This document shows positions 6,502 through 48,114 of a stretch of 64,000 nt of DNA, piece by piece. The notes under the pieces are model-generated. The model had not been told where the DNA came from. It did no database searches and saw only the letters and a program-made list of their open reading frames with translations. The stretch lies in the IMG/VR virus record IMGVR_UViG_3300017963_000190, positions 196,068 through 260,067 of that record; one strand, 5' to 3'. How positions within the stretch are numbered: position 1 is the first letter of the stretch; each line of letters begins with the position of its first letter. The position numbers were made by a program, and so were the translations under genes.

Positions 6502-6504
6502 GTC

Positions 6505-15713: not shown

Positions 15714-15766
15714 CAACTGGTTTGTAGTTATGTTCTAATAACAAAATTATATACCAGGAGTTCAGC

Positions 15767-16624: not shown

Positions 16625-16625
16625 T

Positions 16626-19939: not shown

Positions 19940-20039
19940 CAACTTTTCCGGCAAAGCTGCGAAGTAACTTACTTTCTAAATAATAGGCTAAATCGTATGT
20001 TTGTGTTTAGTCACCTTTTATTCAGTTAGGGGACTCACG

Positions 20040-20447
20040 ATGAAAGCCGGGAATGGCGGTAATAATGGAACCCAATCAAAGGCAGTGACCGTGGACTTTG
20101 AGAGCAACCTCAAAGTCTTGCATAGACCGAGAAATTGTCCGTCGTCGCGTCCGTGCCGACGCCTGGAGTGTCGTTATCACTTGGCAATTGATGCGGTATC
20201 TAGGCGTAGGCGCCCAACGTTTCGACATAATTTTCCGGGGGTACCTCTTGAGGATCTCCAAGAAACCTGCGCATTAGAAGCAGCGGAGCGAAACGGTGGC
20301 TTAACTCACGCAGAGATTGCTGTTCTCATGAACACGTCCACGGAACAGATTAAACAGATAGAGCAAGTAGCGCTCAAAAAAGTGAGTATCAAACTCCGGG
20401 AGCTTAGGAGTACTGGTGATCTTTATCCCTCACTTTTGTTAGTGTAG
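20040..20447 (+). CDS. sigma-70 region-4-like HTH protein with Cys motif
   Basis: GLTHAEIAVLMNTSTEQIKQIEQVALKKV; RPCRRLECRYHL. Confidence 0.7.
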   Translation: MKAGNGGNNGTQSKAVTVDFESNLKVLHRPRNCPSSRPCRRLECRYHLAIDAVSRRRRPTFRHNFPGVPLEDLQETCALEAAERNGGLTHAEIAVLMNTSTEQIKQIEQVALKKVSIKLRELRSTGDLYPSLLLV

Positions 20448-20488
20448 CTCAGCAGGTAGAGCACCTCCTCGTGGTTATTGGTCTTGAT

Positions 20489-20573
20489 GCCCGGGTCGCC
20501 TAGTTGGTCGATGGCACCGGATTTGTAATCCGGAAGCTTTAAGCTCACGCAGGTTCGAATCCTGTCCCGGGCT
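20489..20573 (+). tRNA. tRNA-Thr(TGT) with a long variable arm
   Basis: CCGGA-TT TGT AA-TCCGG; V-arm AGCT-TT-AAGCT. Confidence 0.8.
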
Positions 20574-30062: not shown

Positions 30063-30754
30063 GACGATGCGCGATTTATTACTGGGCTTCACTGTAGGCG
30101 CGGTGATCTTCTCTGTTCTAGCGTTGACTCTAGGATACTGTTACCATGGCTGAAGAAAACGGACATGATTGGATCACCAACGGGCTCGAACAGGCAGTCC
30201 CATTCACAGGCCCACAGCCAGATGATGAACCACGGGTAGAGCATGTTCCAGAGGACCTGGCTAGCGTAGCGCGTGATGCGGGTATGCTCATTAATCCAGC
30301 AATTGCTAGGCACGGGAAGCTAGCTTGACCGTGGGGATAGGGTCTAAACGAAAACGCCTTAGGCGCTTAAAGGCAAAGTACGGTGGTCCAGGGCTGCTAC
30401 CAGCAGGAGAAACGAAAATGAAATTGAAGTATGGTGGTTCAGGTGTACCTCCTACAGGACCGCATCCCAATCCTCCTCGTCCGAAACCGCGCCCGGATTC
30501 TCACAAAGAAGACGCTTGCAAGTGCTCCAACGACTGCGGTGCTACAATAGCTGCCCTGAAGATGCTTGCGCAGTCCCTGGAACGAGAAAATGAATTTCTG
30601 CGCGACGAGCTCAAGCGGCTGCGCGAAGGAGCCCCAGAAAATTGGGTCCACCTAGGCCAAGGTGGGGAGTACGTCCGCAATTTGGGGGATCCTTTGTGGG
30701 AGCGCGGCGAGTTCGTGTGTGAGTATAAAGAACCAAAAGAACCAGGAGAATCCG

Positions 30755-31861
30755 ATGACAAGTGATAACGGGGGCCTGAATTTCAACGAGATAAAGCTCA
30801 CAGCAGAAATAGTTTTCAGAAAGAAAAGCGGAGCCATCATCGACCTCAGCGATCCGGATTTTTCGGGCTCCAATTTTTTCAAGGCGTGGCATGAAGGGGT
30901 TGTTTGGCGTGATATCGAGTTAGAGTTAACAGGCGCAACGTGGGAAGATCTTACTTCTTACGTTCGTAGTGTTTCCCTCTCGTCCAACCCCATAACGCTC
31001 TTTGAGCTGCTGGAGAATTTCTGCACCCCCATCCAGGAGTGCGTGCTCTCGCTCAACGAGCAGCTCAATCTCGTTCATCGCTTTCTAGACAATCAAAGTC
31101 TTCCGCCAGAAGGTATTCCTGTAATTAATCTTGAGGGCAAGGAACAGGTTGTGTGGACTACCAACGGCTTGTCCGATGGAACGGTGGTTGAAGGAACCCT
31201 TCCAGCCAATAAGCTGTATCCCTACGTATACCCTGTGGACAGCACCTTCATTATGGATCAGATGGAGCTCTTCAAAGAGGATATTTCTGTGAAGGAGCTC
31301 TTCCACAAGGTTGTTCTCTGCATGTTGAAGGTGGCTACCAAAGACAACGCTACCTTATGCTTCATGCTGGACCAGGCAGCAGAAGCGCAGGGGCATCGTT
31401 ATGCAGCCGAGCAGCTATCGCCAGCATCAGTGCAGTATCTTCGGCATGAGATTGAAAAGTGGCAGCTACCGGCCCCGCAGATGCTGGTCACCCCCAGAGC
31501 CGTGTCTGAGCTCCTGGGGGATCCAGACCATATCCGGTTCATGGATTTGGTAACAAAAATGGAGCTCTTCTCGCGAGGTATTGTTGGGCGATGGGGCGGC
31601 ATAGAGCTCATCTGCGTGGGGTCCAACTACGATAGTTTTGTGGAGTATGGCAGCCACTCAGAGGCGATGTTGTGCACTGCGCCCTCCTCTTTGGGGATTA
31701 GGCAGGTGCGTGTTCCGTTGCTGGTGCACCCAGTCATCTTGCCGCCACCTACCACGCAGAAGACACCACCCGAAAAAGTTGGGTGGTATGTGTATCAAAA
31801 GGTCACCACCAGCATCCTTCAGTCTCGTGGTGTGGCCACCTGTACGCGTTTGAAGAAGTAG
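30755..31861 (+). CDS. divergent major-capsid-protein (HK97-fold) paralog
   Basis: EIEKWQL...DLVTKMELFSRGIVGRWGG...LGIRQVR...KVGWYVYQ...RGVA resembles jumbo-phage MCP C-termini. Confidence 0.5.
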   Translation: MTSDNGGLNFNEIKLTAEIVFRKKSGAIIDLSDPDFSGSNFFKAWHEGVVWRDIELELTGATWEDLTSYVRSVSLSSNPITLFELLENFCTPIQECVLSLNEQLNLVHRFLDNQSLPPEGIPVINLEGKEQVVWTTNGLSDGTVVEGTLPANKLYPYVYPVDSTFIMDQMELFKEDISVKELFHKVVLCMLKVATKDNATLCFMLDQAAEAQGHRYAAEQLSPASVQYLRHEIEKWQLPAPQMLVTPRAVSELLGDPDHIRFMDLVTKMELFSRGIVGRWGGIELICVGSNYDSFVEYGSHSEAMLCTAPSSLGIRQVRVPLLVHPVILPPPTTQKTPPEKVGWYVYQKVTTSILQSRGVATCTRLKK

Positions 31862-32128
31862 GGCGGCACACACATGGAACACAAATACTACTGTGCAGTT
31901 ATCGTCAACGAGCATGACAGGAAGCCACGCAACTGCCTTTTCAAGAGCGTGTTCCCTCCTTTGTGGGTTGTTGGTTCTTATTCCAGTGGTATGTGGGCCA
32001 CGCAGCGCTTTATTCTTTTGAATTTCTGGGAAATTTCTGAAGAGCATTATCTCCAGTTTCCCTCAGAAATGAGAGATTTTGCGGAGAGCACGTGGCAGCG
32101 CAGGAACGAAGCTCTATAGGTCGTTACG

Positions 32129-32335
32129 ATGCCCCTTTACGAGTACCTTTGCAACAGCTGTGGTGAGCTCACCGAGCATGAGTGCAAGATGGCTGACCGT
32201 CCCAAGCAGGTGCGCTGCGAGCACTGCAGCTCGACGAACACGCAGCAGCTCATTTCCGGTACCAGCTTCATGCTAAAAGGCGGTGGCTGGGGTTCCTCTG
32301 GGTATTCATCCGGAGGAAAGAAAAAGAGGAAGTAG
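32129..32335 (+). CDS. FmdB-family zinc-ribbon protein
   Basis: MPLYEYLCNSCG...CEHC...FMLKGGGW. Confidence 0.85.
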   Translation: MPLYEYLCNSCGELTEHECKMADRPKQVRCEHCSSTNTQQLISGTSFMLKGGGWGSSGYSSGGKKKRK

Positions 32336-32561
32336 ATGTCCTACGATGTCAACGGTAAAGTGGGGTATGAAGTTAAGTACTGCTCCAATTGCCTGGCAGC
32401 TGGTATATTAAGTGAGGTGCGTGGTGAGATTACTCCGTCAGCCTTGCACAAGTGCGAAGCGTGTGGTTTCACGCATGGTGGGTTTAAGGCTGCCAGAGCT
32501 AAAGAGTTTCTGCAGAGGAAGATAGACATCCTCCAAAGCGCTATGGCCCAGCTAAATAAGA

Positions 32562-32762
32562 ATGACCTCGGATCATAAGAAAGCACCCGGACCTAATGGC
32601 CGCATTATGCTGCGCCTTCCTAAGTCTCTACACAAGAAGTGCGTGGAGCTTGCCAAGCGGGAAAATACGAGCCTCAATCAGTTTATCTTAGGTGCCGTTG
32701 CTGAGAGGGTGGGCGCTACTCAGATGTACCACGAGCTCGCAGATCGGTTAGAGCAGAAGTAA
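32562..32762 (+). CDS. HicB-like ribbon-helix-helix protein (orphan)
   Basis: GRIMLRLPKSLHKKCVELAKRENTSLNQFI. Confidence 0.8.
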   Translation: MTSDHKKAPGPNGRIMLRLPKSLHKKCVELAKRENTSLNQFILGAVAERVGATQMYHELADRLEQK

Positions 32763-32821
32763 GTCTTCTTGACATCTCGCCTTTTTCTGCCATTAGTCGT
32801 GAAGGTTTATACAAAATACGA

Positions 32822-32892
32822 GGGTTCATAGTTCAATGGCAGAACGAGTGGCTGTTAACCACTAAGTCCCAGTTCGACTCTGGGTGAGCCCG
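32822..32892 (+). tRNA. tRNA-Asn(GTT)
   Basis: CT GTT AA loop; G73. Confidence 0.9.
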
Positions 32893-32895
32893 CTA

Positions 32896-32965
32896 GGCCC
32901 TTCTTGTAGCTCAGCTGGTAGAGCATGGGACTCCGAGGTCGTGGGTTCGAGTCCCACCTGGCCCG
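32896..32965 (+). pseudogene. degenerate tRNA lacking an anticodon loop
   Basis: Canonical D-arm and T-arm; anticodon arm reduced to TGGGACTCCG; acceptor mispaired. Confidence 0.6.
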
Positions 32966-33000
32966 CTACTTATGTCGAGGCGACGCGCGAGGAGCCGTTG

Positions 33001-33255
33001 ATGAGTAGATCACGCAAACGAAGTCGGGTAGTAGTAATCGTTCGAGGCAGTCTTGGCAGGCTTTTCCGACGTAGGGCGAACAAGGCTATGCGTCGGCGCA
33101 CGAAGCTAGCGCTTGTTCGAGGTCGATATGAGCACGCTCCCAGGCGGCTTGAGGAGGTAAGCGATATCTACGATTACAAGGACTGGAGTCGTTACGTAAC
33201 CAGTGAGGACTCTGAGAGCTTGCACCGTGCGCTCAAGAAGCAGATGCGGAAGTAA
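33001..33255 (+). CDS. small Arg-rich basic protein (MSRSRK type)
   Basis: GAGGAG SD; very basic. Confidence 0.6.
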   Translation: MSRSRKRSRVVVIVRGSLGRLFRRRANKAMRRRTKLALVRGRYEHAPRRLEEVSDIYDYKDWSRYVTSEDSESLHRALKKQMRK

Positions 33256-33329
33256 CGGGCGGAGGGCTTGAAGGTAAGCCGCCTGACTGGGGGTCAGGAG
33301 TTGTGCGGGTTCGACTCCCGCTCGCCCGA
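33256..33329 (+). tRNA. tRNA-Pro(GGG)
   Basis: CCTGA-CT GGG GG-TCAGG. Confidence 0.82.
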
Positions 33330-33339
33330 TAGGTACTTT

Positions 33340-33412
33340 GGTGCCGTAGCTCAGCAGGTAGAGCAGTGGACTGAAAATCCACGTGTCGGTGATTCGACTT
33401 CACCCGGTACCA
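33340..33412 (+). tRNA. tRNA-Phe(GAA)
   Basis: CT GAA AA loop. Confidence 0.92.
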
Positions 33413-33417
33413 CTTCG

Positions 33418-33491
33418 CGGGGAGTAGCTCAGACTGGAAGAGTGCTCGGTTCGGATCCGAGAGGTCGCAGGTTCAAGTCCTGTCTCCCCGA
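33418..33491 (+). tRNA. tRNA-Pro(CGG)
   Basis: TT CGG AT loop; C1-G72. Confidence 0.88.
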
Positions 33492-33503
33492 TTTCTTCCT
33501 ACC

Positions 33504-33532
33504 TTGACATCGTCATCCATTCAGCTTATGCT
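33504..33532 (+). promoter_or_regulatory. sigma70 promoter
   Basis: TTGACA-17 nt-TATGCT. Confidence 0.65.
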
Positions 33533-33784
33533 CTTACCGATTCTGAAGAGGCAGGCGCAACAGCTCTTCGGAAGTTGGCAGCTGGGGGCGCCACTCCGCT
33601 GCCGCCCTCTTGTTTATGGGGTGCGTTATGTGGGACACCTTTGAGGATGGTTACCGCGACGCTTCGGGGGGTTGGCCTCCGAGGGGGTACAAAGAGGATT
33701 ACAAGCGCGGGCGCGCAGCGTGGCACAAGGAAGCCAGGAGACGGCTTCTTGCTTCTTTAGATCCTACTAAACCAAAGCACATAT

Positions 33785-34474
33785 CTATTTTGATCCGGCT
33801 TCCAGAAGAGTCACCAGAATAGTCGCCCCGCCACCTCCCATCGTAGGTCCTTGGTACTGGCACGGCACGTCTGGCTTGTACTGAGTGCCTCCCTTGCATC
33901 CATCCTTCCCCGGTTTCTGTCCACACGGTGGGCTCTTGCGTGCCACGCAGACATCACATCCTAGCGGGAATACGCCGTAGAGCTTCTCATTTCCCTTGGA
34001 GCTCATGACAGGTCCGAAGGTGAACGTTCCCTTGGCATTCTTGACCGACATCACGAGGGGCAAGTTGAAGCCGTCTACCAGGCTGATGTCCAGGATGTCG
34101 TACCATTTGGGGTTGTTGATGTTGAGCTCAGCTTTGGTGCTGCCGCAGCCCACAGGAGCTCCGAAGGCGATCGTCGCGTTCAGGTACTTCCCGCCGAGAG
34201 GGAGATTCTGAGATTTCTTTTTGGGCAGAGTGAAACCGCATTTCAAGGCTGCTGATGGTGTGCAGAATGTTTTCCAGTCGGCCGCCACTATTTTTGAGTC
34301 CGACCCAAACGACACGTACACTTTGGTATCGGCGCCTGTGCTGTTCAGCAGTGTTGCTGTAGTAGGCGTTCCAGATTTTACGGGGGCTTCCTTTTTCTGA
34401 GGCTTTTCCTTGCACGCTACCGCTAACGGTAGTAGCATAGCAAAGAGAAACGCGAGAAAGCGGTATTGCTTCAT
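33785..34474 (-). CDS. thaumatin-like lipoprotein
   Basis: DISLVDGFNLP thaumatin signature; LAVAC lipobox; Cys-rich. Confidence 0.7.
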   Translation of the reverse strand: MKQYRFLAFLFAMLLPLAVACKEKPQKKEAPVKSGTPTTATLLNSTGADTKVYVSFGSDSKIVAADWKTFCTPSAALKCGFTLPKKKSQNLPLGGKYLNATIAFGAPVGCGSTKAELNINNPKWYDILDISLVDGFNLPLVMSVKNAKGTFTFGPVMSSKGNEKLYGVFPLGCDVCVARKSPPCGQKPGKDGCKGGTQYKPDVPCQYQGPTMGGGGATILVTLLEAGSK

Positions 34475-34566
34475 TGTACTGTCCTTTTGTGGTGGATGTT
34501 TCAGTTGAGTAGATTTAATCAAGATCGGCGGCTGGAAAAGCGCCGCGCGTCTTGTAAAATTCACAG

Positions 34567-35130
34567 ATGGACAACGATTCGTGGTGGGAGCAGTGGTGGA
34601 AGACTGATGGAGGCAAAATGCTGACGCAACGAGAACTGCAGGACAAAATTCTTACTATGCTTCCTACCTACCGTAGGGAGCTACAGAAGATGGAGAATCG
34701 TTTAATTACTTGTGGAGCGGTCGACCGTCACTTTGTGAGCGAGAGCTTCACAAGGGTTGGCATCCACATTTTTGGAGAGGCTTCAGAAGGCCATAACGCT
34801 CCCATCGATTATCTTCCCCATGACCACCAGCTGTACATTATCCGAGCGGAGGTTTCTCCTGTATCAGATGGAGACGCTTTCATGATTAAGGGTAAAGGCA
34901 ACGAGAGCTGTCCGCTTTGTGGCAAACCTATTCCGGTGCAGCTCAAGGAAGCTCTGGTACCACAGGATCTAGTGCTTGTGGGATGTCCTGTGCTTAAGGA
35001 GGGGGAAATAGTTATCGACGTGTTACCTATTTTCTCTCCTACCTTGGTCAAGGACGCTATCAGCGTGTGTCTTAACCTTCCTCATCAGCGCAGTAAAAAT
35101 CCGATGACGCGAGTGTCTCGGCTGCTCTAG
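34567..35130 (+). CDS. hypothetical protein
   Basis: Follows a CTTGTAAAAT motif. Confidence 0.55.
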   Translation: MDNDSWWEQWWKTDGGKMLTQRELQDKILTMLPTYRRELQKMENRLITCGAVDRHFVSESFTRVGIHIFGEASEGHNAPIDYLPHDHQLYIIRAEVSPVSDGDAFMIKGKGNESCPLCGKPIPVQLKEALVPQDLVLVGCPVLKEGEIVIDVLPIFSPTLVKDAISVCLNLPHQRSKNPMTRVSRLL

Positions 35131-35133
35131 GAG

Positions 35134-35418
35134 ATGCGCATGGATTACCCTGAACGAAATATAACAGAAAAAGACTTAATCCGTTCTGCGGTGCTGGCCT
35201 GCAAAAGCTATTACAGCGGTGGCCCGGATCCAACCACCGGCACCTACCTTTTCACATCGGCCACTTTTTCCAACGCCTTCAACAAGGTGACCGGCATCAA
35301 GGGTCCTATAGACGGCCTCATCGTACAAGCGATGCTCTGCGGGCGCGATTGGGTAATAGAGCTGCCCAAGAATTACTGGCAGCTCACAGAAGCAATTCTC
35401 ATGGAGCACATTCTATGA
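35134..35418 (+). CDS. hypothetical protein
   Basis: Collinear ORF. Confidence 0.55.
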   Translation: MRMDYPERNITEKDLIRSAVLACKSYYSGGPDPTTGTYLFTSATFSNAFNKVTGIKGPIDGLIVQAMLCGRDWVIELPKNYWQLTEAILMEHIL

Positions 35419-35807
35419 CGATATCCAAGAAGATGCCAAAGCATAAAAAAGGCTGCGCGTTTCTGGAAGACCCTGATCAGCTGTGCACCTGCAACGCCAA
35501 GTATCTGGGAAAACCCTTTGCGCATTGGCAAACGCGGGCGCAGGAGCTCGTAATGGACACGCTTTTGCGTGGTGTGTACCAGTATCAAGATCCGGACGAG
35601 CTGTTCTGCCTGCCTCGGCATCTTGCTTCCCGGAAACTGTTCCAGCTGGCTTACTCCGTAGATCCCGCCATTCTGCGCAAAACTGCTGATGAACATACTC
35701 GTTGTGCGGCCGGGTTCGTGTCCATCATGGCGGAAATAACCGAGGGCAAGTGGCTTCCATACTTTGATCCTGCGACTTGTGGGCTGCCAGATAAGCGCAA
35801 AGCTTGA
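35415..35807 (+). CDS. hypothetical protein
   Basis: ATGA coupling; H...C...CTC. Confidence 0.5.
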   Translation: MTISKKMPKHKKGCAFLEDPDQLCTCNAKYLGKPFAHWQTRAQELVMDTLLRGVYQYQDPDELFCLPRHLASRKLFQLAYSVDPAILRKTADEHTRCAAGFVSIMAEITEGKWLPYFDPATCGLPDKRKA

Positions 35808-35832
35808 CAACGTCTTGCAGCTTGCTTAAACT
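35804..35832 (+). promoter_or_regulatory. sigma70 promoter
   Basis: TTGACA-17 nt-TAAACT. Confidence 0.65.
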
Positions 35833-36061
35833 GTTCGTGCTGTGGGTCTGAGACTAAAAATCTTCCTCGTGGTGAGGAGGTGAGTGGAGTCAAGGCGCAA
35901 GCGGGCAGCTTTAAGTAAGCCCCGGCCCACACAATTTTGAGCACAAAAATGCTGACCTGGCCATGTCCCAAATGTTATCTGCGTGACCTCGTTGAGCTCA
36001 GGGACGGTTATTGGTGCCGCCATTGCGGACACTATATTCCTTATGATTTCGAGGAAGAGAA

Positions 36062-36640
36062 ATGACTGTTTGGTTCACGAGCGATTGGCACCTCTTCCAC
36101 GATAATATCCTGAAGCTTGTCCCACGTCCGTTCAAGAACGTGCAGCAGATGCATAGTGTCATCTTGGCGAACTACCGGTCGTGTGTGCGCGAGGGCGATG
36201 TGGTGCATTTTCTTGGGGACCTGACTCTGCGCGGCCCCTCTGGCATCGAGGCAGTTCGCAGGCTCGTGGGGGGTTTACCTGGCACCAAGCATTTCGTCCT
36301 GGGTAATCACGATCGCTTAAAAGTGCAGAGCCTTTTGAAAATGGGCTTTGCCAGCGTGCACTCCTCATTGGTGTTACGCCATGGATCGTGTCAATATTTA
36401 CACGTGCACGATCCGGATGAGGATCTGAACACAGGTTGGTCGTACGCACCGCGTATCATCTGTGGGCATGTACACGAGAAATGGAGGTACCGTGCTGAGC
36501 CTCGACCAGCAGTGAACGTAGGTGTGGACGCCTGGGGCTTTCAGCCAGTGCGCAGGCATACCGTGATGACTCTATTCGACAACCCACCTGACAGCTTTCG
36601 CAGGATGCTTGTGGGCAACGCAGCTGACTTTGCGGCGTGA
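36062..36640 (+). CDS. calcineurin-like metallophosphoesterase
   Basis: SDWH, LGD, GNHD, GHVH, NVGVD. Confidence 0.9.
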   Translation: MTVWFTSDWHLFHDNILKLVPRPFKNVQQMHSVILANYRSCVREGDVVHFLGDLTLRGPSGIEAVRRLVGGLPGTKHFVLGNHDRLKVQSLLKMGFASVHSSLVLRHGSCQYLHVHDPDEDLNTGWSYAPRIICGHVHEKWRYRAEPRPAVNVGVDAWGFQPVRRHTVMTLFDNPPDSFRRMLVGNAADFAA

Positions 36641-36644
36641 TCTC

Positions 36645-37112
36645 ATGACCGACGATTGGAAAGAAAGGGCAGCTTCTATTTTGCTTCCTGGAGAAGTGAT
36701 CCAGGAGCCTGAGAAGCCTAAACCAAAGAAAATCAAGCGTAGTAAGAAGAAGCAAAGTTCTAAGCGGGTGCCTACAAAGGGTGTTTTTTCTTACGAGTAT
36801 AATGAGAGCGATGATGGTCTTCTTATTAAGGGCCTTCAGCGAGCGCTAGACGTACCAGCGGATGGTATAATCGGGCCTCGTACACTAACTGCCTGGAAGA
36901 ATGCCTATGATGCAGATGGCGTTTTTATGGTGAAGAACAACACAAATGCCGCAGTTATTTTGCCTGGCGTAGAGATTACGTTGGATCCTTTTGAGGAACG
37001 TATAATTGTAGTACCCAGTTCTGTGTGGCAGAACGATAATTTACTTGCAATGGTACGGAGAGCTTACATCAGCATTGCTCCAGTTCCTGTACCAGAAAAA
37101 TGGTGGCTATAG
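36645..37112 (+). CDS. peptidoglycan-binding domain protein
   Basis: LQRALDVPADGIIGPRT. Confidence 0.7.
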   Translation: MTDDWKERAASILLPGEVIQEPEKPKPKKIKRSKKKQSSKRVPTKGVFSYEYNESDDGLLIKGLQRALDVPADGIIGPRTLTAWKNAYDADGVFMVKNNTNAAVILPGVEITLDPFEERIIVVPSSVWQNDNLLAMVRRAYISIAPVPVPEKWWL

Positions 37113-37151
37113 CTCAGTTGGTTAGAGCGCTGGTTTGTGGCATCAGAGGTC
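37102..37151 (+). pseudogene. 5' part of a disrupted tRNA-His(GTG)
   Basis: G-1 GTGGCTA, D-arm, CTGGT-TTGTGGC-ATCAG, AGGTC, then no T-arm. Confidence 0.8.
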
Positions 37152-37181
37152 ATTAAAACTCTTGACGGCCACCCTTATTAT

Positions 37182-37254
37182 GGTACCATTGGTGTAGCGG
37201 TCTGCACGCTAGATTGTGGTCCTAGAAGCATCAGTTCGACTCTGATATGGTACC
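37182..37254 (+). tRNA. tRNA-His(GTG), intact copy inside the cassette
   Basis: G-1:C73; GTACCAT/ATGGTAC; TT GTG GT loop. Confidence 0.85.
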
Positions 37255-37259
37255 TTTAC

Positions 37260-37865
37260 CTGCCTTCAAAGAAAAACATCCCACGCGTTTGTGAGTTTTG
37301 TGGATCGGATTTTTTGGCGCGAATAACGGAAATTCGTCGAGGTAAAGCTCGTTTTTGTAGCCGATCTTGTGCGGCACGAAGCAAGCCACCTGTTTTGGCA
37401 GGAGCCACTGGTCCGGCAAACCCAAATTGGCGGGGTGGTGTAATATGCTCCAGTGCTGGGTACCACTATGTTCGTATGCATGAGCACCCACGGGCCACCA
37501 ATAATGGCTATGTAAAGCGGGCTGACTTGGTCATGGAAGAGGTTTTAGGGAGGGAGCTTCTTCCAGATGAAATTGTGCATCATAAAAATGAAGACAAAGG
37601 CGACGATTCGCCAGAAAATCTGGAGGTAATAACTTACTCCGCGCATTCTTCCCTGCACGGGAAAGCCCGTGGTAAAAAACCTGTTGAGCAAAAATCAGAT
37701 CACCCAACTAATCGCCGTTATGAATGGCCTGCGGATGAGATACTTTTGCAATGGCGACGTAACGCGTCTTTACGTGAAATAGCGGCGGAGATGGGATGTA
37801 GCCATAAGAGTGTAGATAGACGCATAAAGAAAATACAAAAACGGGGCAAAAGGCAGCTTTGGTAG
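37260..37865 (+). CDS. HNH homing endonuclease with Zn finger and HTH (start uncertain)
   Basis: CEFC...FCSRSC; NPNWRGG; VHHKNEDKGDDSPENL. Confidence 0.85.
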   Translation: MPSKKNIPRVCEFCGSDFLARITEIRRGKARFCSRSCAARSKPPVLAGATGPANPNWRGGVICSSAGYHYVRMHEHPRATNNGYVKRADLVMEEVLGRELLPDEIVHHKNEDKGDDSPENLEVITYSAHSSLHGKARGKKPVEQKSDHPTNRRYEWPADEILLQWRRNASLREIAAEMGCSHKSVDRRIKKIQKRGKRQLW

Positions 37866-37867
37866 CT

Positions 37868-37884
37868 AATCCGACTAGCCACCC
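37868..37884 (+). pseudogene. 3' remnant of the disrupted tRNA-His
   Basis: AAT-CCGAC-TAGCCAC-C is perfectly complementary to GTGGCTA at 37103. Confidence 0.7.
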
Positions 37885-37912
37885 TACCTTGTAAAATATT
37901 GAAGAGGAATTA

Positions 37913-38296
37913 ATGATGGAGAAACATATCCTGCGAAAATTTAAGCTCGATGCTAAGACGGCGGCGCACACTCCCGATGCGCGTGTGGGGGAATGGGTAG
38001 TGTGCATCCCAGACGAAGACTGGATATGCCCTGGGTGCGGTTGCGGTAATGAGGGCGGTGATGGTTTGTATTCTGATGACGATAGGGAATCCGTCGGGGA
38101 TATTGATAGTCTCATCTTCTACTACGATGAGCTTTTACTGTGTAGTAAGTGTGAGTGGGAAGGTGCCGCTGGAACTTTGTACAACTTAGCAATGAAAGCC
38201 AAGGACATGGTTCAGTGCCCGTGCTGCAAAGGTGATGGAAGTGTGCGCAGTAAAAAAGCAGCAGAGTACAAGAAGCTAAAGAAGAGGAAGTCATGA
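37913..38296 (+). CDS. Zn-finger protein (DnaJ-like CxxCxGxG at the C-terminus)
   Basis: CPGC, CSKC, CPCCKGDG. Confidence 0.6.
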   Translation: MMEKHILRKFKLDAKTAAHTPDARVGEWVVCIPDEDWICPGCGCGNEGGDGLYSDDDRESVGDIDSLIFYYDELLLCSKCEWEGAAGTLYNLAMKAKDMVQCPCCKGDGSVRSKKAAEYKKLKKRKS

Positions 38297-38799
38297 GCAA
38301 CGATGGAGACTTCGAGGGGAGGATCGTTCCTTTCCAAGCTTTGATGAAGGGGCGTGGTCCTGATACCGTTGTCCGTTTTCTCACCAAGGAGCTCTACACA
38401 GAAATCCAGTGCAGGGTGATGGAAGACAAGTACTGGCGTCAGGTGGAGCATGCTAGGGAAAAAGGCCACCAGCCTAGTCAGTTGCTGATACAGAAACTAG
38501 AAGCCCTCAACCGCTGCGAGACGCTGGACGAGTTTGCCTACTGGCTTCAGGACCAAAGCGGCCGGGCGATGCTGGTGTGCAACGCGTGTGGGAGGGTGGA
38601 TGTGGAGGAGGTGCTGGAGATCAAAGAAAACGGAGAGCGCCGCCGCCTTTGTACATCCTGCTGCCACAGCCTGGGGCTCCTGGAGATCTACTCTGGGGCA
38701 AAGGCTTTGATGCCAGTTGATCGCGTGGTTCGACAAAAGGACCCCAATATCATCGATGTTGAAGCAACGGTTATTGATGTTGAGGTAGACGAGGACTAG
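38293..38799 (+). CDS. hypothetical Zn-binding protein
   Basis: CNAC...CTSC. Confidence 0.55.
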   Translation: MSNDGDFEGRIVPFQALMKGRGPDTVVRFLTKELYTEIQCRVMEDKYWRQVEHAREKGHQPSQLLIQKLEALNRCETLDEFAYWLQDQSGRAMLVCNACGRVDVEEVLEIKENGERRRLCTSCCHSLGLLEIYSGAKALMPVDRVVRQKDPNIIDVEATVIDVEVDED

Positions 38800-38800
38800 T

Positions 38801-39160
38801 ATGCCTGAAGCTAAGAAAGAGGTCATCTGGGTTATGTGTCCCAGCTGTGGGGCAGTTGCATTATCTGACGATGGGCATATCCCAAACAACTGGCCAGCGC
38901 CGGAAATAGAATATACTTCCACAGGTAGGTTTAGGCGATTATTACGCAAGGGGCGTTATATTGCCGAGCAGCATTTCATGGCGTGTAATATCTGCATGGA
39001 GTTCGTTTGCCCCACATGCTTAACCGATCATGAAGGCAATCTGATGGAATGGTGCATTGCCTGCGAGACAAAAGAAAAAGGGTTGCGTGTAGACCACCCG
39101 GATCCACGGTTGCGCATCGACGCCGTTTCTTTGACCCTTTTACGGGAGAAGTATAAATGA
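38801..39160 (+). CDS. hypothetical Zn-binding protein
   Basis: Four CxxC pairs. Confidence 0.55.
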   Translation: MPEAKKEVIWVMCPSCGAVALSDDGHIPNNWPAPEIEYTSTGRFRRLLRKGRYIAEQHFMACNICMEFVCPTCLTDHEGNLMEWCIACETKEKGLRVDHPDPRLRIDAVSLTLLREKYK

Positions 39161-39574
39161 TGACAGCTGAAGAATTCGCAGCCTTATATATTCTTACGGT
39201 TGCTTCAAGCCTGCAGAAATATACCCAGCAGACTACTCCTGGCATGAAAGCGCAAAGTGTGGAGGAGACGTTCGACCGCATGCGCATAGAGGGCTACGTG
39301 GTTGTGCGCCAGGAAGACGCTGGTTCTCCCTGCTGAGGGATGCGTGCCTGTGCTCATACGGTTATTGAGAAAGAGTTGGGATTGCCGCCACCGGATGAGG
39401 TGTACCCACTAAAAGATATGGACCTCTCTGGCGTGTGGGAGCGTGTGCGCAAGCGAATAGCAGACGGCACCATCTAGACTTGACAACGACACCAATCTGG
39501 CTATAGTACCATTGTTATGTTGATGAACTTCCACAGAGTGCGCTTGAAACCCATGGCCCAGAACTCAATTTTCT

Positions 39575-39646
39575 GGGTCGGTGGTGTAAAGGTTGCACAA
39601 CGGACTTTTAATCCGTCCGGAGCAGGTTCGATTCCTGTCCGGCCCA
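39575..39646 (+). tRNA. tRNA-Lys(TTT)
   Basis: CT TTT AA loop. Confidence 0.9.
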
Positions 39647-39662
39647 TTTCTTGAGGTGACGT

Positions 39663-40274
39663 TTGTCCTCATTCAAGCCACACGATCTTGAACGTACGCC
39701 ACTCAAGGTGAGCAGTCAAGGGTTCGTGTTGGCTGAATGCCCCAAGCACCCGTATGCGTGGAAGCGAGATGGTTGCGTGCATTTTCACCGGTTGGTGATG
39801 GAGAACCATCTTGGACGGTACCTTCGCGAAGATGAGTTCGTATTCCACAAAGACGAGGACAGAAAAAATAACGATATAGAGAATCTGAGAATCGTTATCC
39901 GGTCTCCGGCAACACGGGTGTACAAACCAAGGAGCGCACCACCGAAGAGGATTTGTGGTGTGTGCAAGGAGGGGTTTCGTCCGGAGTGGCTGGAGTGCAA
40001 AGCGAACTACAGCGATTCTAAGTACTGCTCGGATTTTTGCCGAGCAGAAGCCAAAAGGAGCGCTAAGAAAAAGGCGCACGCGGTAGGAAGGGACTTCAAG
40101 AAAATCGAACCACCCAGTCGCGAAGAGCTGGCGGCTTTGATTTGGGAGTATCCATCAACCAAGCTTGCTGAAAAGTTTGGTGTGTCCGACCGCACCGTCG
40201 GCAACTGGTGCAAGAGGTATGGGATAGATAAACCACCACGAGGATACTGGGCCTCGATAAGGTCTAGGCAGTGA
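39663..40274 (+). CDS. HNH homing endonuclease
   Basis: HRLVMENHLGRYL...VFHKDEDRKNNDIENL; C-terminal HTH. Confidence 0.85.
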   Translation: MSSFKPHDLERTPLKVSSQGFVLAECPKHPYAWKRDGCVHFHRLVMENHLGRYLREDEFVFHKDEDRKNNDIENLRIVIRSPATRVYKPRSAPPKRICGVCKEGFRPEWLECKANYSDSKYCSDFCRAEAKRSAKKKAHAVGRDFKKIEPPSREELAALIWEYPSTKLAEKFGVSDRTVGNWCKRYGIDKPPRGYWASIRSRQ

Positions 40275-40283
40275 AAATTATCT

Positions 40284-40350
40284 GGGTCGCGATCTGGGAT
40301 CAGAGAGGGCTCCAACCCCTCCCAGCCGGGTTCAATTCCTGGGCGACCTG
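40284..40350 (+). tRNA. tRNA-Trp(CCA) with a minimal D-arm
   Basis: GAGGG-CT CCA AC-CCCTC; D-arm GATC-TGG-GATC; 67 nt. Confidence 0.7.
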
Positions 40351-40627
40351 TCTCGGTGCTTAAGGTAAACGCGTGACCTATCTATCGCAGCGGGCGCCAA
40401 AGCTGCTGTAGGAGCATCGTGAAATCGGTCCTTCGATAAGGGGAAAGAAGGATCGAGGGTGTGGGATACCGAGTCGGTGGGCCCCCTCGGTTAGTATCTG
40501 TTGCCGCTCTTGTGTGGCAGGTACTAGCCCATTGCAGCCGTTGGTACCCTGAAGATGGGCTACAGGGTCCGGTCCACTGCCCCGAGTATCTAAAACGATG
40601 CGTGGAGCCCTCTCCCACACCCACCTT

Positions 40628-40701
40628 GGGCGATTAGCTCAGCCTGGAAGAGCGCTGTCTTGACTCGGCAGATGTCACAGGTTCAAGTCCTGTATCGCCC
40701 A
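40628..40701 (+). tRNA. tRNA-Val(GAC)
   Basis: TT GAC TC loop. Confidence 0.88.
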
Positions 40702-40878
40702 GAGGGGCTAAGAGCCCCTACTCAGGACCTGGTCCAGTCTGAGGCTACCCAGGTGCCAGTGAGCCACGAGGCGGGTGCGCTGCGAGCTCGTGGATGACGC
40801 CTGGGATGTTGCAAGCGCACAGGCCGGTGCTCCGGTTGTCCGCCCGATATTTCTGGAGCACTCGACCACGGACCATTA

Positions 40879-40951
40879 GGGCTTGTAGCTTAGTGGCTAA
40901 AGCGCACGCCTGATAAGCGTGAGATCGACGGTTCGAGTCCGTCCAGGCCCA
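40879..40951 (+). tRNA. tRNA-Ile(GAT)
   Basis: CT GAT AA loop. Confidence 0.93.
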
Positions 40952-40957
40952 CTTTGC

Positions 40958-41032
40958 GCGCCCGTAGCTCAGTTGGATCAGAGCATCGGTCTACGGAACC
41001 GAGGGCCGCAGGTTCGAGTCCTGCCGGGCGTA
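40958..41032 (+). tRNA. tRNA-Arg(ACG)
   Basis: CT ACG GA loop; A20. Confidence 0.93.
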
Positions 41033-41204
41033 AAAGGAGGCTTACCAATGGCCGATGAAGATCCGTATGAGGATACCCTTCCAGAAGTCAAGGACATGAC
41101 AACGTTGGGGTTGCTTGACGAGCTCGCCACGTTCTATCCTGGGCTGGAAGATCAAGAAGCCTTTATTGAGCTCACACGCCGCATCAAATCCTCAGGGGCT
41201 GCCA

Positions 41205-41441
41205 ATGCGTAAACTATTACGACGTCTTTGGTGCCGCCTCCGCTTCCACGATCTGCAAATCGTTAAACACATTCACGGGGACATCAAGCACGGTACCCGT
41301 CTGCTGAAGTGCCGGAGGTGCGAGCGCCGCTTTGTGATGTCCGATCCCCACCGAGCCTTTTTCTGCTACTCCGACAATCCCATGTTCGCGCGAGACCTCA
41401 TGAAGTTGTATGGGCTGCCAGCGGATGACTTGTATGGATAA
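41205..41441 (+). CDS. DUF1660-like small Zn protein
   Basis: LWCRLRFH...CRRC. Confidence 0.5.
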   Translation: MRKLLRRLWCRLRFHDLQIVKHIHGDIKHGTRLLKCRRCERRFVMSDPHRAFFCYSDNPMFARDLMKLYGLPADDLYG

Positions 41442-41482
41442 TGCGGACCCGTTTCCACCTATCACTTTTCCTAAGTGTATTC

Positions 41483-41511
41483 TTGACACCAAGCCCCTCA
41501 CTGGTTATATA
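41483..41511 (+). promoter_or_regulatory. sigma70 promoter
   Basis: TTGACA-17 nt-TATATA. Confidence 0.65.
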
Positions 41512-41530
41512 CTAGTAAAGGAGGTGCAGC

Positions 41531-42337
41531 ATGCCCTTCCAACCCTTCCTGATTAGCAAACAGAAACAGTTCACCAACGGGATCGTCTATGGCCTACGCA
41601 CCGCGGATGGCTACCCTATCGAGGTCACCGATACCTTCCTCCCCTGCTACACCAAAGATGCTGTTGGGCGCCGGCAGAACAAGCTGACGGGGGTTGGCGT
41701 AGGAGATCGTTACGAGCGTTGGATGGTAGGCGTATCTGTGATGAGTGGCTGCCCCGTACGCTGCAAATTCTGCGCAACAGGTCAGCTTAAGAAGTGGCGT
41801 TCTCTCACCGCGCAGGAGATAGCTGCCCAGGTCCAGTTCATCCTGGAGCGCAACTTGCGCTACGATCCTGCTAAATCTTACGAGTTCAAAGTGAACTACA
41901 CCCGTATGGGGGAGCCATTTCTCAACATTGAGGAAGTGATTCAAGCCATCCATTTGATCGACGAGCTTCTGCCAAACGTTGACGTACACCACTACATCTC
42001 CACTATTGGAATCGTCGGCTCAGACTTCGACTGGATCGCAGACAACGTCACTCTGCAACTCTCCCTTCACTCTCTCGACCCTGAACGCCGCAATTGGTTG
42101 ATCCCCTACAAGAAGAAGCTCACCATCCCAGAGCTCGGCGACGTCAGAACGTACAGCGATCTGAAAACTACCCTCAACCTCACTCTGGTGGAAGAAGCCG
42201 ACTTCGACATCGTGCGGCTGCAGAAATTCTTCCCTCCAGAGCACTTCTTCGTCAAGCTCAGTCCCATCAATCCAAACGAAACCTCAGAGAGACACGGCTT
42301 AGGTACCGGTGTTATCGACGAGGTTAATTTGCATTAG
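41531..42337 (+). CDS. RlmN/Cfr-like radical SAM protein, N-terminal (main) part
   Basis: GCPVRCKFC; MGEP; ISTIG; LQLSLHS; lacks the C-terminal AACGQL. Confidence 0.85.
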   Translation: MPFQPFLISKQKQFTNGIVYGLRTADGYPIEVTDTFLPCYTKDAVGRRQNKLTGVGVGDRYERWMVGVSVMSGCPVRCKFCATGQLKKWRSLTAQEIAAQVQFILERNLRYDPAKSYEFKVNYTRMGEPFLNIEEVIQAIHLIDELLPNVDVHHYISTIGIVGSDFDWIADNVTLQLSLHSLDPERRNWLIPYKKKLTIPELGDVRTYSDLKTTLNLTLVEEADFDIVRLQKFFPPEHFFVKLSPINPNETSERHGLGTGVIDEVNLH

Positions 42338-42351
42338 CGAGGAGGCACGCT

Positions 42352-42495
42352 ATGGATACCGACAAGATCAAAGAAGAACTGGAAGCTGCTGGGTATGACC
42401 ACGCAGTAGCGATTGCGACCCAAGCTGAGGTGGAAGCGGGCGCTGCCTGTGGGCAGCTCAGCGTCATCACAGAGAGTGAGGAAGACCAGCAATAA
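42352..42495 (+). CDS. 47-aa peptide carrying the RlmN C-terminal AACGQL catalytic-Cys motif
   Basis: GGAGG SD; MDTDKIKEELEAAGYDHAVAIATQAEVEAGAACGQLSVITESEEDQQ; absent from the ORF track. Confidence 0.8.
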   Translation: MDTDKIKEELEAAGYDHAVAIATQAEVEAGAACGQLSVITESEEDQQ

Positions 42496-43005
42496 GTGCT
42501 TGACAACGTCAAAGGGGCGTGCTTAACTTGCTGGCATGCCAACCTACCTCATTGACGATCAAGCTGCCTTTGATGCTGCTCTCGCTCGTCTTAGAAAAGA
42601 GCGTGACGCAGAAGAGCGCTCTTTTTTCTCTTCAGACCCTCCTCCTGTTCACGTTATTTCTACACAGACGTTTGAGCGCCAATATCAGGAGACGAACGAG
42701 CGCTGCAGGCAAGAACTATTCAGTGTATTCAAGATCCCAAAGGGTCTGATGGAGAAATAAGGATGTCTGATGAGATTCAATACTTGACCATCGAATGCCC
42801 CCTATGTGGAGGCAAGTCCGCTATCCCTCATGCTTCCGAGCTCAGTGACATCGTCCACTGTGTTGTGGGTTGCCCAGGTTGTGGGAAGCATCTTCTGTGT
42901 TTGCCTCCTGGAAAGCTTGTCAAGTTTGACGACCAGGGAGAACACCGGGATTATCCTGTGCACGAGCTGCCAAAAGGGTAGCCCGTCTTGTAAAATACAA
43001 TTAAG

Positions 43006-43386
43006 ATGAGCGACTTTTTGATTTGCCGCAAGTGCGGCAGCCTCAAGCGGGCGCATACCCATATTGTCTTTCACGACTTTGGCTTCCAGCTAGGGGAGCC
43101 TGGCGTTCATTATTGCCCCACCTGCGATCCTGAGCCGGCGCCCCCGCAAGTGCATCCTATTACCGATCCCGAGGAAGTGTTTGGGAGCAATATCGCCGGA
43201 ATGATTTTTGCCTCCCTGAAAGAAAAAGAAGCCAGGATTAAAGCGCTCGAAGACGCTGTGCGGGAGATGCTCAAGTATGAATGCCCGCGCTGCGATCTGG
43301 ACGTGCAGGCAGCAGTAGACGTTTACGGCGTGCAGTTGACCATCACCGGAGTGTTCGATGACAACGAAGAAAAAGAGCCGCGTTGA
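43006..43386 (+). CDS. hypothetical Zn-binding protein
   Basis: CRKC, CPTC, CPRC. Confidence 0.55.
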   Translation: MSDFLICRKCGSLKRAHTHIVFHDFGFQLGEPGVHYCPTCDPEPAPPQVHPITDPEEVFGSNIAGMIFASLKEKEARIKALEDAVREMLKYECPRCDLDVQAAVDVYGVQLTITGVFDDNEEKEPR

Positions 43387-47470: not shown

Positions 47471-47839
47471 ATGAGCCGCAAGATGCAGACACCAATCCCT
47501 ATCGAATCTTATGCGCGTGAGGGGCGTAAACTACTAGCGCAGCCAGGAGGAGCTCGTCTGGCCTTGGAGTTCCTGCTTGATTGTCTGGAGCGCCACAAGG
47601 ATGAGCTGCGAGAACTGAGAACCGCACCTGCTCCGAAGACGCCAGCCTTGGCTGATTTGGGCCTTAGATTCGGTCAGATGAAAGAGGTGGTGGGAGAGCA
47701 GGTGGCAATTATGGAGCGGGCTCTAATTGTGGAGGCTCTTTATCGTACCGATGGGAATGCGACTAAGGCAGCAGAGCTTCTTGGGATAAGTCGTAAGGGT
47801 ATCCAGCTGAAGATGCAGTCTTTGGGGATCAAGCGGTAG
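47471..47839 (+). CDS. Fis/NtrC-type HTH_8 DNA-binding protein
   Basis: ERALIVEALYRTDGNATKAAELLGISRKGIQLKM. Confidence 0.85.
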   Translation: MSRKMQTPIPIESYAREGRKLLAQPGGARLALEFLLDCLERHKDELRELRTAPAPKTPALADLGLRFGQMKEVVGEQVAIMERALIVEALYRTDGNATKAAELLGISRKGIQLKMQSLGIKR

Positions 47840-47841
47840 AA

Positions 47842-47910
47842 AGGGCACGACGGGATTTGAACCCGCGTTGTCGGGGGCCTTAATCCTCGACAACCATCCA
47901 AAGCGCGCCC
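47842..47910 (-). ncRNA. D-armless tRNA-like RNA
   Basis: GGGCGCG/CGTGCCC acceptor; GCGGG-TTCAAAT-CCCGT T-arm; TTGTCG/CGACAA stem. Confidence 0.6.
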
Positions 47911-47953
47911 AAGCGGCCCGAGTGGTTGTACCCTCACACCCGGACCTAGTATT

Positions 47954-48114
47954 GCCAGTATATTCGAATCACCGATGGCATTTAAGCTGCTGCGTAAGGC
48001 ATTAAGTCTTGCGTGCTGTCTTTACACTACAAACCCATAAAGAGAGGGTTTGGCGGGAATCAAACCCGCACTTCAAGATAGTTTGTCGGCAGCGTTCGAG
48101 CCGGTGAAACTGGC
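47954..48114 (-). ncRNA. circularly permuted tRNA-like RNA (YrlA-type Y RNA candidate) 1
   Basis: Order is T-arm, loop-closed acceptor CAAACCC/GGGTTTG, D-arm, inside a long terminal stem. Confidence 0.65.

Follow-up and report, generated by a model that had tools for sequence, protein, structure and literature searches.

A nuclease-plus-spare-tRNA cassette splitting tRNA-His in a 260-kb phage genome

In a 260-kb phage genome, the original histidine tRNA gene is found in two pieces that lie on either side of a two-gene unit, a homing-type HNH nuclease gene fused to its own histidine tRNA gene. The locus was examined in a 64,000-nt window (positions 196,068 to 260,067 of IMG/VR record IMGVR_UViG_3300017963_000190), the whole stretch of DNA analysed. 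We consider it most probable, with fairly good confidence, that this selfish cassette landed inside the T arm of the resident gene, breaking it while supplying a replacement, which would be a natural counterpart of the home-and-rescue design used in synthetic gene drives. That the nuclease cuts the old allele and that the new tRNA is immune are inferred. Nucleases in phage tRNA clusters are known, but we found no description of the fused rescue tRNA with a split target.

Anatomy of the split tRNA-His locus

Table 1 Features of the tRNA-His locus (coordinates of the 64,000-nt window)
Position	Strand	Feature
37102..37151	+	5' part of the resident (old) canonical tRNA-His, first 50 nt: G-1, acceptor 5' strand, D arm, anticodon arm (GTG) and variable loop (AGGTC); ends at position 48
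37152..37181	+	Left arm of the cassette: AT-rich filler plus a tRNA-His-3'-end-like piece (37164-37174), then a 7-nt spacer
37182..37254	+	Cassette-borne replacement tRNA-His(GTG), with encoded G-1 and C73
37260..37865	+	HNH_3 homing-type endonuclease ORF: N-terminal Cys4 zinc finger, HNH core, C-terminal HTH; CTG (37260) where homologs have ATG; stop TAG at 37863-37865
37868..37884	+	3' remnant of the resident tRNA-His, last 17 nt: T-loop positions 58-60, T-stem 3' strand, acceptor 3' strand, C73 and the first C of CCA

All four elements described in the first-pass annotation, namely a truncated canonical tRNA-His, its displaced 3' end, an intact divergent tRNA-His and an HNH gene, were confirmed (Table 1). 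tRNA likeness of the old 5' piece stops after the variable loop, and our own nhmmer tRNA profile matched 37105-37150. The upstream ORF (36609-37112) ends with a TAG inside this piece, indicating that the piece is native to the site. The 8-nt acceptor strand of the 3' remnant is a perfect complement of 37102-37109, and the 17-mer occurs once in the window, where even with up to 3 mismatches allowed only 0.15 matches are expected. TAGCCACC occurs 3 times on the + strand, and only this copy has T-arm context. The annotation had placed the remnant right after the HNH stop codon, whereas it starts 2 nt (CT) further on. No acceptor 5' strand or T-stem 5' strand precedes the remnant, as would be needed for a downstream tRNA overlapping the HNH 3' end like that in L101, one of the loci with a close homolog of the HNH.

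The intact tRNA-His(GTG) was called by both ARAGORN and Rfam (37182-37254/5, 51.1 bits) and is only 66% identical to the first 50 nt of the old piece, but 84% identical to the HNH-linked tRNA-His of L007, an unrelated phage. The nuclease ORF matched Pfam HNH_3 (29.5 bits, cut-off 24.8) and PHROG HNH endonuclease families (down to E = 1e-26), and all invariant Cys, His and Asn columns of the 8-member homolog alignment are kept. A profile search of solved structures gave nothing below E = 0.1. At the start codon, left unclear in the annotation, homologs begin MPSKK and the window has CTG at that position. No in-frame ATG, GTG or TTG lies between the tRNA and the first zinc-finger cysteine, and the TTG used by the database gene call removes that cysteine pair. 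The HNH may accordingly be expressed at a very low level or be at the start of the decay phase that follows fixation of a homing element.

The alternative 3' end at 37164-37174, noted as weaker in the annotation, is real, and Rfam uses 37166-37173 as a substitute acceptor strand to score 37103-37173 as a T-armless tRNA (29.5 bits). Similar acceptor-like pieces lie upstream of the cassette tRNA in L007 and in L015, another phage with a sister cassette, and 11 nt at 37166-37176 are identical to the piece after the HNH stop in L007. The piece gives a competing pairing with the old 5' part (6 of 7, with one G-T), and the 8-nt direct repeat GCCACCCT at 37168-37175 matches 37878-37885, so the history is not a single clean insertion. 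Two promoter consensus matches fall in the filler, but their count is at chance level for the region and the spacing in sister cassettes is inconsistent.

Natural counterparts and sister cassettes

We assessed whether the flanking pieces fit one natural gene. A strict pattern for the rebuilt old gene gave no match in 185,579 genomes, the predicted T arm plus 3' end gave none in viral contigs, and the exact anticodon-arm pattern found only the phage itself among viral contigs. Loosening the anticodon arm recovered tRNA-His genes in two bacterial MAGs (L134 and L135), identical to the 3' remnant in 17/17 positions and to the 5' piece in 42/50, with all differences in the anticodon stem, the same variable loop although the pattern did not constrain it, and exactly 9 nt (positions 49-57) between the pieces. 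It also recovered an intact homolog in a phage tRNA array (L136), matching 45/50 and 15/17. The two pieces joined in silico with those 9 nt were called tRNA-His by ARAGORN, while the pieces joined without them and the T-armless alternative were not. The acceptor stem of the old gene is the common proteobacterial type, and complementarity of the fragments alone therefore does not prove that they come from one gene copy.

tRNA-His and HNH behave as one unit. All close HNH homologs found (8 lineages, 46-56% identity: L007, L008, L011, L015, L100, L101, L102 and the window) have a tRNA-His(GTG) 0-5 nt upstream, with the ATG (CTG in the window) abutting the tRNA 3' end, in different gene neighbourhoods, while of 40 more distant HNH_3 loci scanned only 3 hold any tRNA. 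tRNA and HNH identities across the 8 cassettes did not co-vary significantly (Mantel r = 0.16, p = 0.19), and we make no claim of co-evolution. Comparison of L015 with L105, a syntenic array without the HNH, showed the 5' part of the resident tRNA-His upstream of the cassette (29/35 identical) and its T-loop-to-3' end, still joined through the spacer to its native neighbour tRNA-Pro(ggg), directly after the HNH stop, consistent with an equivalent interruption in the T arm. However, the anticodon arm of the L105 allele is identical to that of the new tRNA of L015 (14/14), such that L105 may be a recombinant rather than a pristine empty site.

The same split-plus-replacement layout recurs, with other nucleases and breakpoints, for Ser in the window and for His, Ala-1 and Ala-2 in L020, another phage from the same sample, where each 5' piece pairs 7/7 with the 3' piece across its own cassette. 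In the paralogous Ile cassette of L020 the old tRNA also stops at the variable-loop/T-stem boundary (position 48/49). These results support the suggestion in the first-pass annotation of a general, convergent strategy. The Lys-HNH-Trp and Val units, which it raised as possible older examples, carry no recognisable old-tRNA halves and cannot be called such on this evidence, and the LAGLIDADG label for the Ser/Val nuclease rests only on a structural look-alike, not on Pfam, which gave no nuclease family.

No empty allele of this phage was found. Flanking ORFs returned only the same contig in two samples and no homolog among 5.8 billion proteins, public contigs from the two metagenomes that hold the phage showed no variant, only bacterial tRNA cross-matches, and a megablast of 35000-41000 against cultured phages gave no match.

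Inferred origin and alternative explanations

We infer that the HNH recognises canonical-type tRNA-His genes and breaks them at the 5' side of the T stem or the start of the T loop, and that repair copies the cassette into the break, here with loss of positions 49-57, leaving dead fragments upstream and downstream. The cassette tRNA-His differs from the target in the acceptor stem, D arm and T stem, would restore His decoding and is presumed not to be cut, such that the element would destroy its target site without costing the phage a tRNA and could then spread into HNH-less tRNA-His alleles during co-infection. The direction and mode of transfer are likewise inferred.

A less likely alternative is that the cassette landed beside the old tRNA-His, which would be the whole of 37102-37174, and that its T arm was later destroyed, for instance by repeated cutting by the resident HNH and sloppy repair, while the remnant after the HNH came in with the cassette or belongs to another, older tRNA-His. 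The Rfam match, in which 16 nt replace the T arm, the L020 Ile cassette, which has the same layout with no 3' remnant after the HNH, the His-acceptor-like element after the L007 HNH stop and the flanking direct repeat would agree with this. Yet the upstream piece needs two substitutions to derive from the old acceptor strand and the downstream remnant none, the latter carries exactly the T-arm part that the upstream piece lacks and matches a natural gene 17/17, and in L015 the downstream remnant is still joined to the old gene's native neighbour. By our estimate, 6 of 7 pairs within about 25 positions is expected by chance about one time in three.

Local tandem duplication of tRNA-His with divergence of one copy and decay of the other, near an ordinary free-standing HNH gene, is very unlikely. 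Phage tRNA arrays do contain duplicated isoacceptors and pseudogenes, but the old and new genes differ in acceptor, D-arm and T-stem types, the new gene resembles the HNH-linked tRNA-His of L007, and a duplication does not place two parts of the old gene on opposite sides of the new tRNA and the HNH. Chance resemblance or an assembly chimera is more doubtful still. Although the old 5' piece attracts many bacterial tRNA contigs and unitigs break inside it, two JGI assemblies from different samples are identical over the locus, unitigs on either side overlap by 30 nt with no differences and have equal depth (about 8-9x), and the 17-mer match is far beyond chance. A functional split or intron-containing tRNA-His, as with split and permuted tRNA genes in archaea and algae (PMC3218864), can be all but dismissed, since the rejoined halves cannot form a T arm, no intron family matched in 36900-38100 at E up to 10 and an intact tRNA-His is present.

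Related systems and implications

The T4/T6 SegB nuclease (PMC2330249; PMC13096335) is likewise embedded among phage tRNA genes. It recognises the T stem-loop and cuts near the 3' end of tRNA genes, with homing replacing the tRNA region of the recipient; for the HNH, a target in the T arm is inferred from the breakpoints. Its ORF abuts or overlaps a tRNA gene, such that tRNA processing cuts its mRNA, and it moves together with an adjacent tRNA (the tRNA-Tyr plus segB repeat unit). SegB is a free-standing GIY-YIG enzyme, whereas only HNH_3 and HTH domains were found here, and it is promiscuous across many tRNA genes, whereas each subfamily here sits beside one isotype. In the SegB accounts we consulted, neither a split target tRNA flanking the unit nor a dedicated replacement isoacceptor is described. 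T5 F-TflI/II/IV and mycobacteriophage cluster M HNH genes (cited in PMC2330249, PMC10644984, PMC5966550) are free-standing HNH-type endonucleases inside phage tRNA clusters, credited with generating differences in tRNA repertoire between relatives. Target halves flanking a nuclease-plus-tRNA unit are not described in the secondary accounts we could consult, and no homolog above about 41% identity over 63% of the protein exists in 50,697 cultured-phage records.

In 'fractured genes' with split inteins (PMC2677866), a homing endonuclease gene also leaves two gene pieces, but function is kept by protein trans-splicing, whereas here the pieces are dead and function is supplied by a second, complete gene carried by the element. 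The locus does not fit a group I intron, given the T-arm insertion with loss of 9 nt, or an integrase-mediated island, as neighbouring ORFs are a metallophosphatase, a PG-binding-like protein and unknowns, and the old tRNA is not restored. The inferred logic is identical to that of synthetic home-and-rescue (HomeR) and cleave-and-rescue gene drives (PMC7968924), in which a nuclease targeting a needed gene and a sequence-diverged, cleavage-resistant copy of that gene are inserted at the target. Those are engineered, Cas9-based and built in diploid animals, while this one is natural, protein-guided and in phages, and the need for the target tRNA is unproven.

More tentatively, large phages with tRNA arrays may host a whole class of such elements, each a homing nuclease physically fused to a diverged, presumably uncuttable copy of the very tRNA it targets, with either the stop codon inside the D arm of the tRNA or the start codon abutting its 3' end. 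Several nuclease families (at least two HNH types and a LAGLIDADG-like one) would have reached this design independently for at least four isotypes with flanking old-gene pieces (His, Ser, Ala, Ile), with a fifth, Asp, seen only as an upstream fragment. Serial invasions would leave nested tRNA halves, making these elements the main engine of tRNA turnover in such arrays, and they might also swap host-like tRNAs for unusual ones that escape host tRNA-cleaving defences.

Homing endonucleases that land in a useful gene normally need an intron or intein to avoid harming their carrier, and this element appears to solve the problem in a third way, by carrying a spare, diverged copy of its target. 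The finding would give a concrete mechanism for how phage tRNA repertoires are replaced gene by gene and would explain the many tRNA halves and pseudogenes that litter these arrays and confuse annotation. The fragments record past target alleles, so specificity and resistance could be read from sequence, and the tight overlap of nuclease ORFs with tRNA genes suggests that tRNA processing sets nuclease expression.

The 260,067-bp viral contig that contains the window, IMGVR_UViG_3300017963_000190, is matched by a second contig from another sample that is identical over 30609-44293, and the same sequence occurred at about 8-9x depth in one sediment and one seawater metagenome, without variants. 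ARAGORN identified 37 tRNA genes spread among ORFs, and nothing similar was found among 50,697 cultured-phage records.

tRNA-His pieces on either side of an HNH gene

The first 50 nt of the locus form a textbook tRNA-His 5' part, comprising G-1, the acceptor strand, the D arm, the anticodon arm with GTG and the variable loop AGGTC, and end where the T stem should begin. An intact tRNA-His(GTG) starts thirty nucleotides later (Rfam, 51.1 bits), and five nucleotides after its C73 begins an ORF with Pfam HNH_3 (29.5 bits, cut-off 24.8) and a C-terminal HTH. A 17-nt piece located two nucleotides after the stop codon of this ORF reads as T-loop end, T-stem 3' strand, acceptor 3' strand, C73 and C. 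The acceptor strands of the 5' and 3' pieces are perfectly complementary, and the 17-mer is unique in the window, with only 0.15 matches expected even when three mismatches are allowed. These results confirm the arrangement proposed in the first-pass annotation, in which a tRNA-His is split by a new tRNA-His plus an HNH endonuclease gene.

Coordinates of features in the window and in other viral contigs. L020 (IMGVR_UViG_3300017963_000239) is an 82-kb contig from the same sample; L009, L015, L103 and L105 are described in the text.
Sequence	Feature	Coordinates
Window	Upstream ORF (PG_binding_3-like)	36609-37112
Window	TAG stop of the upstream ORF	37110-37112
Window	Old tRNA-His, 5' part	37102-37151
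Window	Acceptor strand of the 5' part	37102-37109
Window	Region scored by Rfam as a T-armless tRNA	37103-37173
Window	Second piece resembling a tRNA-His 3' end	37164-37174
Window	New tRNA-His(GTG)	37182-37254
Window	TAG stop of the HNH_3 ORF	37863-37865
Window	Old tRNA-His, 3' part	37868-37884
Window	Acceptor strand of the 3' part	37876-37883
Window	Ser cassette, whole	15676-16675
Window	Old tRNA-Ser(TGA), 5' part	15676-15713
Window	260-aa HTH protein	15767-16549
Window	New tRNA-Ser(tga)	16539-16625
Window	Old tRNA-Ser(TGA), 3' part	16626-16675
Window	ORF ending at a D-arm fragment	19992-20444
Window	D-arm fragment and tRNA-Thr(tgt)	20442-20573
Window	tRNA pseudogene after tRNA-Asn(gtt)	32905-32964
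Window	tRNA-Lys(ttt), HNH_3 paralog and tRNA-Trp(CCA)-like gene	39574-40350
Window	HNH_3 paralog of this unit	39663-40274
Window	tRNA-Trp(CCA)-like gene of this unit	40283-40350
Window	T arm, acceptor strands, D arm and anticodon arm (minus strand)	47820-48100
Window	T-arm-like hairpin, two copies	55897-55914 and 56077-56095
Window	ORF after tRNA-Val(tac)	58129-58833
L020	Region with three split-tRNA cassettes and a partial one	1-6507
L020	His cassette, 5' piece	110-154
L020	His cassette, HNH of another PHROG family	171-599
L020	His cassette, new tRNA	585-658
L020	His cassette, 3' piece	about 664-687
L020	Ala-1 cassette, 5' piece	3936-3966
L020	Ala-1 cassette, HNH_3	3983-4474
L020	Ala-1 cassette, new tRNA	4462-4533
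L020	Ala-1 cassette, 3' piece	4553-4586
L020	Ala-2 cassette, 5' piece	5404-5436
L020	Ala-2 cassette, HNH_3	5474-5863
L020	Ala-2 cassette, new tRNA	5849-5921
L020	Ala-2 cassette, 3' piece	6025-6070
L105	tRNA-Asp 5' fragment, HNH_3 gene and intact tRNA-Asp; HNH-less tRNA-His	587-1314 and 1976-2070
L103	Degenerate tRNA-His pseudogene	2230-2310
L015	tmRNA gene	1031-1380
L009	tmRNA gene	2929-3311

We next assessed whether the two pieces belong to one gene. A pattern fixing the first 27 nt and the predicted T arm plus 3' end, but leaving 21-23 nt free, found two bacterial MAGs, one of them alphaproteobacterial, whose tRNA-His equals the 3' remnant at 17/17 positions and the 5' piece at 42/50 positions, with every difference in the anticodon stem. 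The variable loop was the same although the pattern did not constrain it, and exactly nine bases (positions 49-57) lie between the two pieces. This acceptor stem is the common proteobacterial type, such that complementarity alone would not prove a single origin. A phage tRNA array (L136) holds an intact homolog that matches 45/50 and 15/17, with no nuclease beside it. Joining the window's pieces with the nine bases gave a sequence that ARAGORN calls tRNA-His, while the bare join and the T-armless alternative were not called. The upstream ORF ends with a TAG inside the old 5' piece, so that piece is native to this site, and the same habit of an ORF stop inside a tRNA is seen in the nuclease-then-tRNA cassettes described below. 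No empty allele of this phage was found.

A second piece, between the old 5' part and the new tRNA, also resembles a tRNA-His 3' end, and Rfam uses it to score a T-armless tRNA at 29.5 bits. It pairs less well with the old 5' strand than the downstream remnant does (one mismatch and one G-T); the first-pass annotation had called it a weaker alternative 3' end. Eleven of its nucleotides are identical to the piece that follows the HNH stop in L007, a contig with a homologous cassette, where that piece forms a hairpin before a T run, and comparable pieces precede the cassette tRNA in L007 and in L015, another contig with such a cassette. We read it as part of the cassette's left arm, perhaps a relic of an earlier target. 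It also forms an 8-nt direct repeat with the downstream remnant, and the alternative that the cassette landed beside an old gene whose T arm later decayed is unlikely but is retained.

Linkage of tRNA-His and HNH across lineages

Homologs of the HNH (46-56% identity) begin MPSKK, while the window has L(CTG)PSKK at that position, the likely position of the start codon that the first-pass annotation had left unclear; the CTG may mean low expression or early decay. In every lineage with usable context (contigs L007, L008-10, L011-14/L099, L015-17, L100, L101 and L102), a tRNA-His(GTG) ends 0-5 nt before the ATG. The surrounding genes differ between lineages, and L007 shares almost nothing else with the window. 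The window's new tRNA-His is 84% identical to that of L007 but only 66% identical to the old piece. Four of the eight HNH-linked tRNA-His genes (L008, L100, L101 and L102) have T loops that depart from the near-universal TTC start (for example ATCG), which could be how they avoid a T-loop-reading nuclease, but the window and L007 copies keep the canonical loop. In L103, a degenerate canonical-type tRNA-His pseudogene lies 7 nt upstream of a His-family HNH (46% identity) with no intact tRNA-His beside it; it has the same T-stem and acceptor type as the window's old gene, a destroyed anticodon region, and matching 2-nt deletions on both acceptor strands. tmRNA genes lie inside the phage tRNA arrays of L015 and L009 (Rfam, 103.8 and 83.7 bits, respectively).

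More distant paralogs (40-45% identity) sit beside other isotypes, namely Ile, Asn, Ser and Asp, while of 40 remote HNH_3 loci scanned only 3 hold any tRNA. In cultured phages the nearest relatives (about 40% identity) lie inside methylase genes, as homing elements do. Divergence of the tRNA and the HNH was not significantly correlated (r = 0.16, p = 0.19), so we claim linkage and not co-evolution.

L015 and L105, the latter with an HNH-less tRNA-His, have syntenic arrays (Gln, Phe, Ala, Tyr, Ile, [His], Pro-ggg, Val, Thr, Thr). The L105 tRNA-His, which ARAGORN does not call, is unusual, with an aberrant D arm, and the array otherwise lacks tRNA-His. In L015 the 5' part of that gene (29/35 identical) lies upstream of the new tRNA-His plus HNH, and directly after the HNH stop come the old gene's T-loop end, T-stem and acceptor 3' strands, its spacer, and its native neighbour tRNA-Pro(ggg). 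This is the same interruption, in the same part of the tRNA, as in the window, although the left breakpoint in L015 could not be placed exactly and the L105 anticodon arm equals that of the new L015 tRNA (14/14), so L105 may itself be a recombinant. In the Ile cassette of L020, which uses a paralogous HNH_3, the old tRNA-Ile also stops at the variable-loop/T-stem boundary.

Other cassettes and tRNA fragments

Our tRNA profile found many tRNA fragments outside the ARAGORN calls. Within the window, tRNA-Ser(TGA) is split in the anticodon loop, and between its parts lie an HTH protein and a new tRNA-Ser(tga) that contains the stop codon of the ORF. The acceptor strands pair 7/7, nothing is lost, and TTGAA is present at both junctions. 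A paralog of that protein (33% identity, E = 6e-36) follows tRNA-Val(tac). It has no Pfam nuclease hit, only an HTH, and a structure search of the Atlas gave only a LAGLIDADG-like look-alike (TM 0.57/0.68); no old tRNA-Val halves were seen around it. Similarly, no Lys halves flank the unit in which tRNA-Lys(ttt) is followed by an HNH_3 paralog and, 8 nt later, by a tRNA-Trp(CCA)-like gene with a reduced D arm. ARAGORN misses this gene and Rfam scores it only 22 bits. It is the only Trp decoder in the array.

In L020, three split-tRNA cassettes (His, Ala-ggc and Ala-tgc) and the partial Ile case lie within 6.5 kb, with three kinds of HNH genes. Each 5' piece pairs best with the 3' piece across its own cassette, and the two Ala cases keep the G3-U70 pair. 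In the nuclease-then-tRNA units the stop codon lies inside the D arm of the new tRNA, as in three of the L020 cassettes (13-15 nt overlap). The L105 Asp unit shows the same overlap, preceded by a fragment that looks like the 5' part of an old tRNA-Asp.

Other fragments in the window include a tRNA pseudogene directly after tRNA-Asn(gtt), with a D arm, T arm and acceptor 3' strand but a collapsed anticodon arm (Rfam, 32.4 bits, model positions 7-64), and a D-arm fragment, at which an ORF ends, 17 nt upstream of an unusually long (85-nt) tRNA-Thr(tgt). On the minus strand, a T arm plus acceptor 3' strand is followed after 9 nt by the complementary acceptor 5' strand, a D arm and an anticodon arm, where Rfam gives a weak 195-nt tRNA hit; this is either a 3' half followed by its cognate 5' half in permuted order or two decayed tandem copies. 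Two copies of the same T-arm-like hairpin lie about 180 nt apart, outside any called tRNA.

Comparison with known systems and inferred mechanism

The closest characterized system is T4 SegB, which recognizes the T stem-loop, cuts tRNA genes near the 3' end and drives replacement of the tRNA region, and whose ORF abuts a tRNA gene (PMC2330249). In T6 it amplifies a tRNA-Tyr plus segB unit (PMC13096335). HNH genes in the arrays of T5 and cluster M mycobacteriophages are credited with tRNA diversity. Nucleases in phage tRNA arrays are known, while a split target flanking a nuclease-plus-isoacceptor unit was not described in any of the papers that could be searched. Conceptually, the inferred design equals the synthetic home-and-rescue drive (PMC7968924).

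Overall, the interpretation in the first-pass annotation, that the His locus follows the same logic as the Ser case with a different nuclease family and insertion point, is supported. In the absence of activity data, cleavage specificity and the immunity of the new tRNA are inferred, and the best-supported reading is a homing nuclease that targets a tRNA gene and carries a diverged replacement, such that insertion destroys the target site without loss of decoding.
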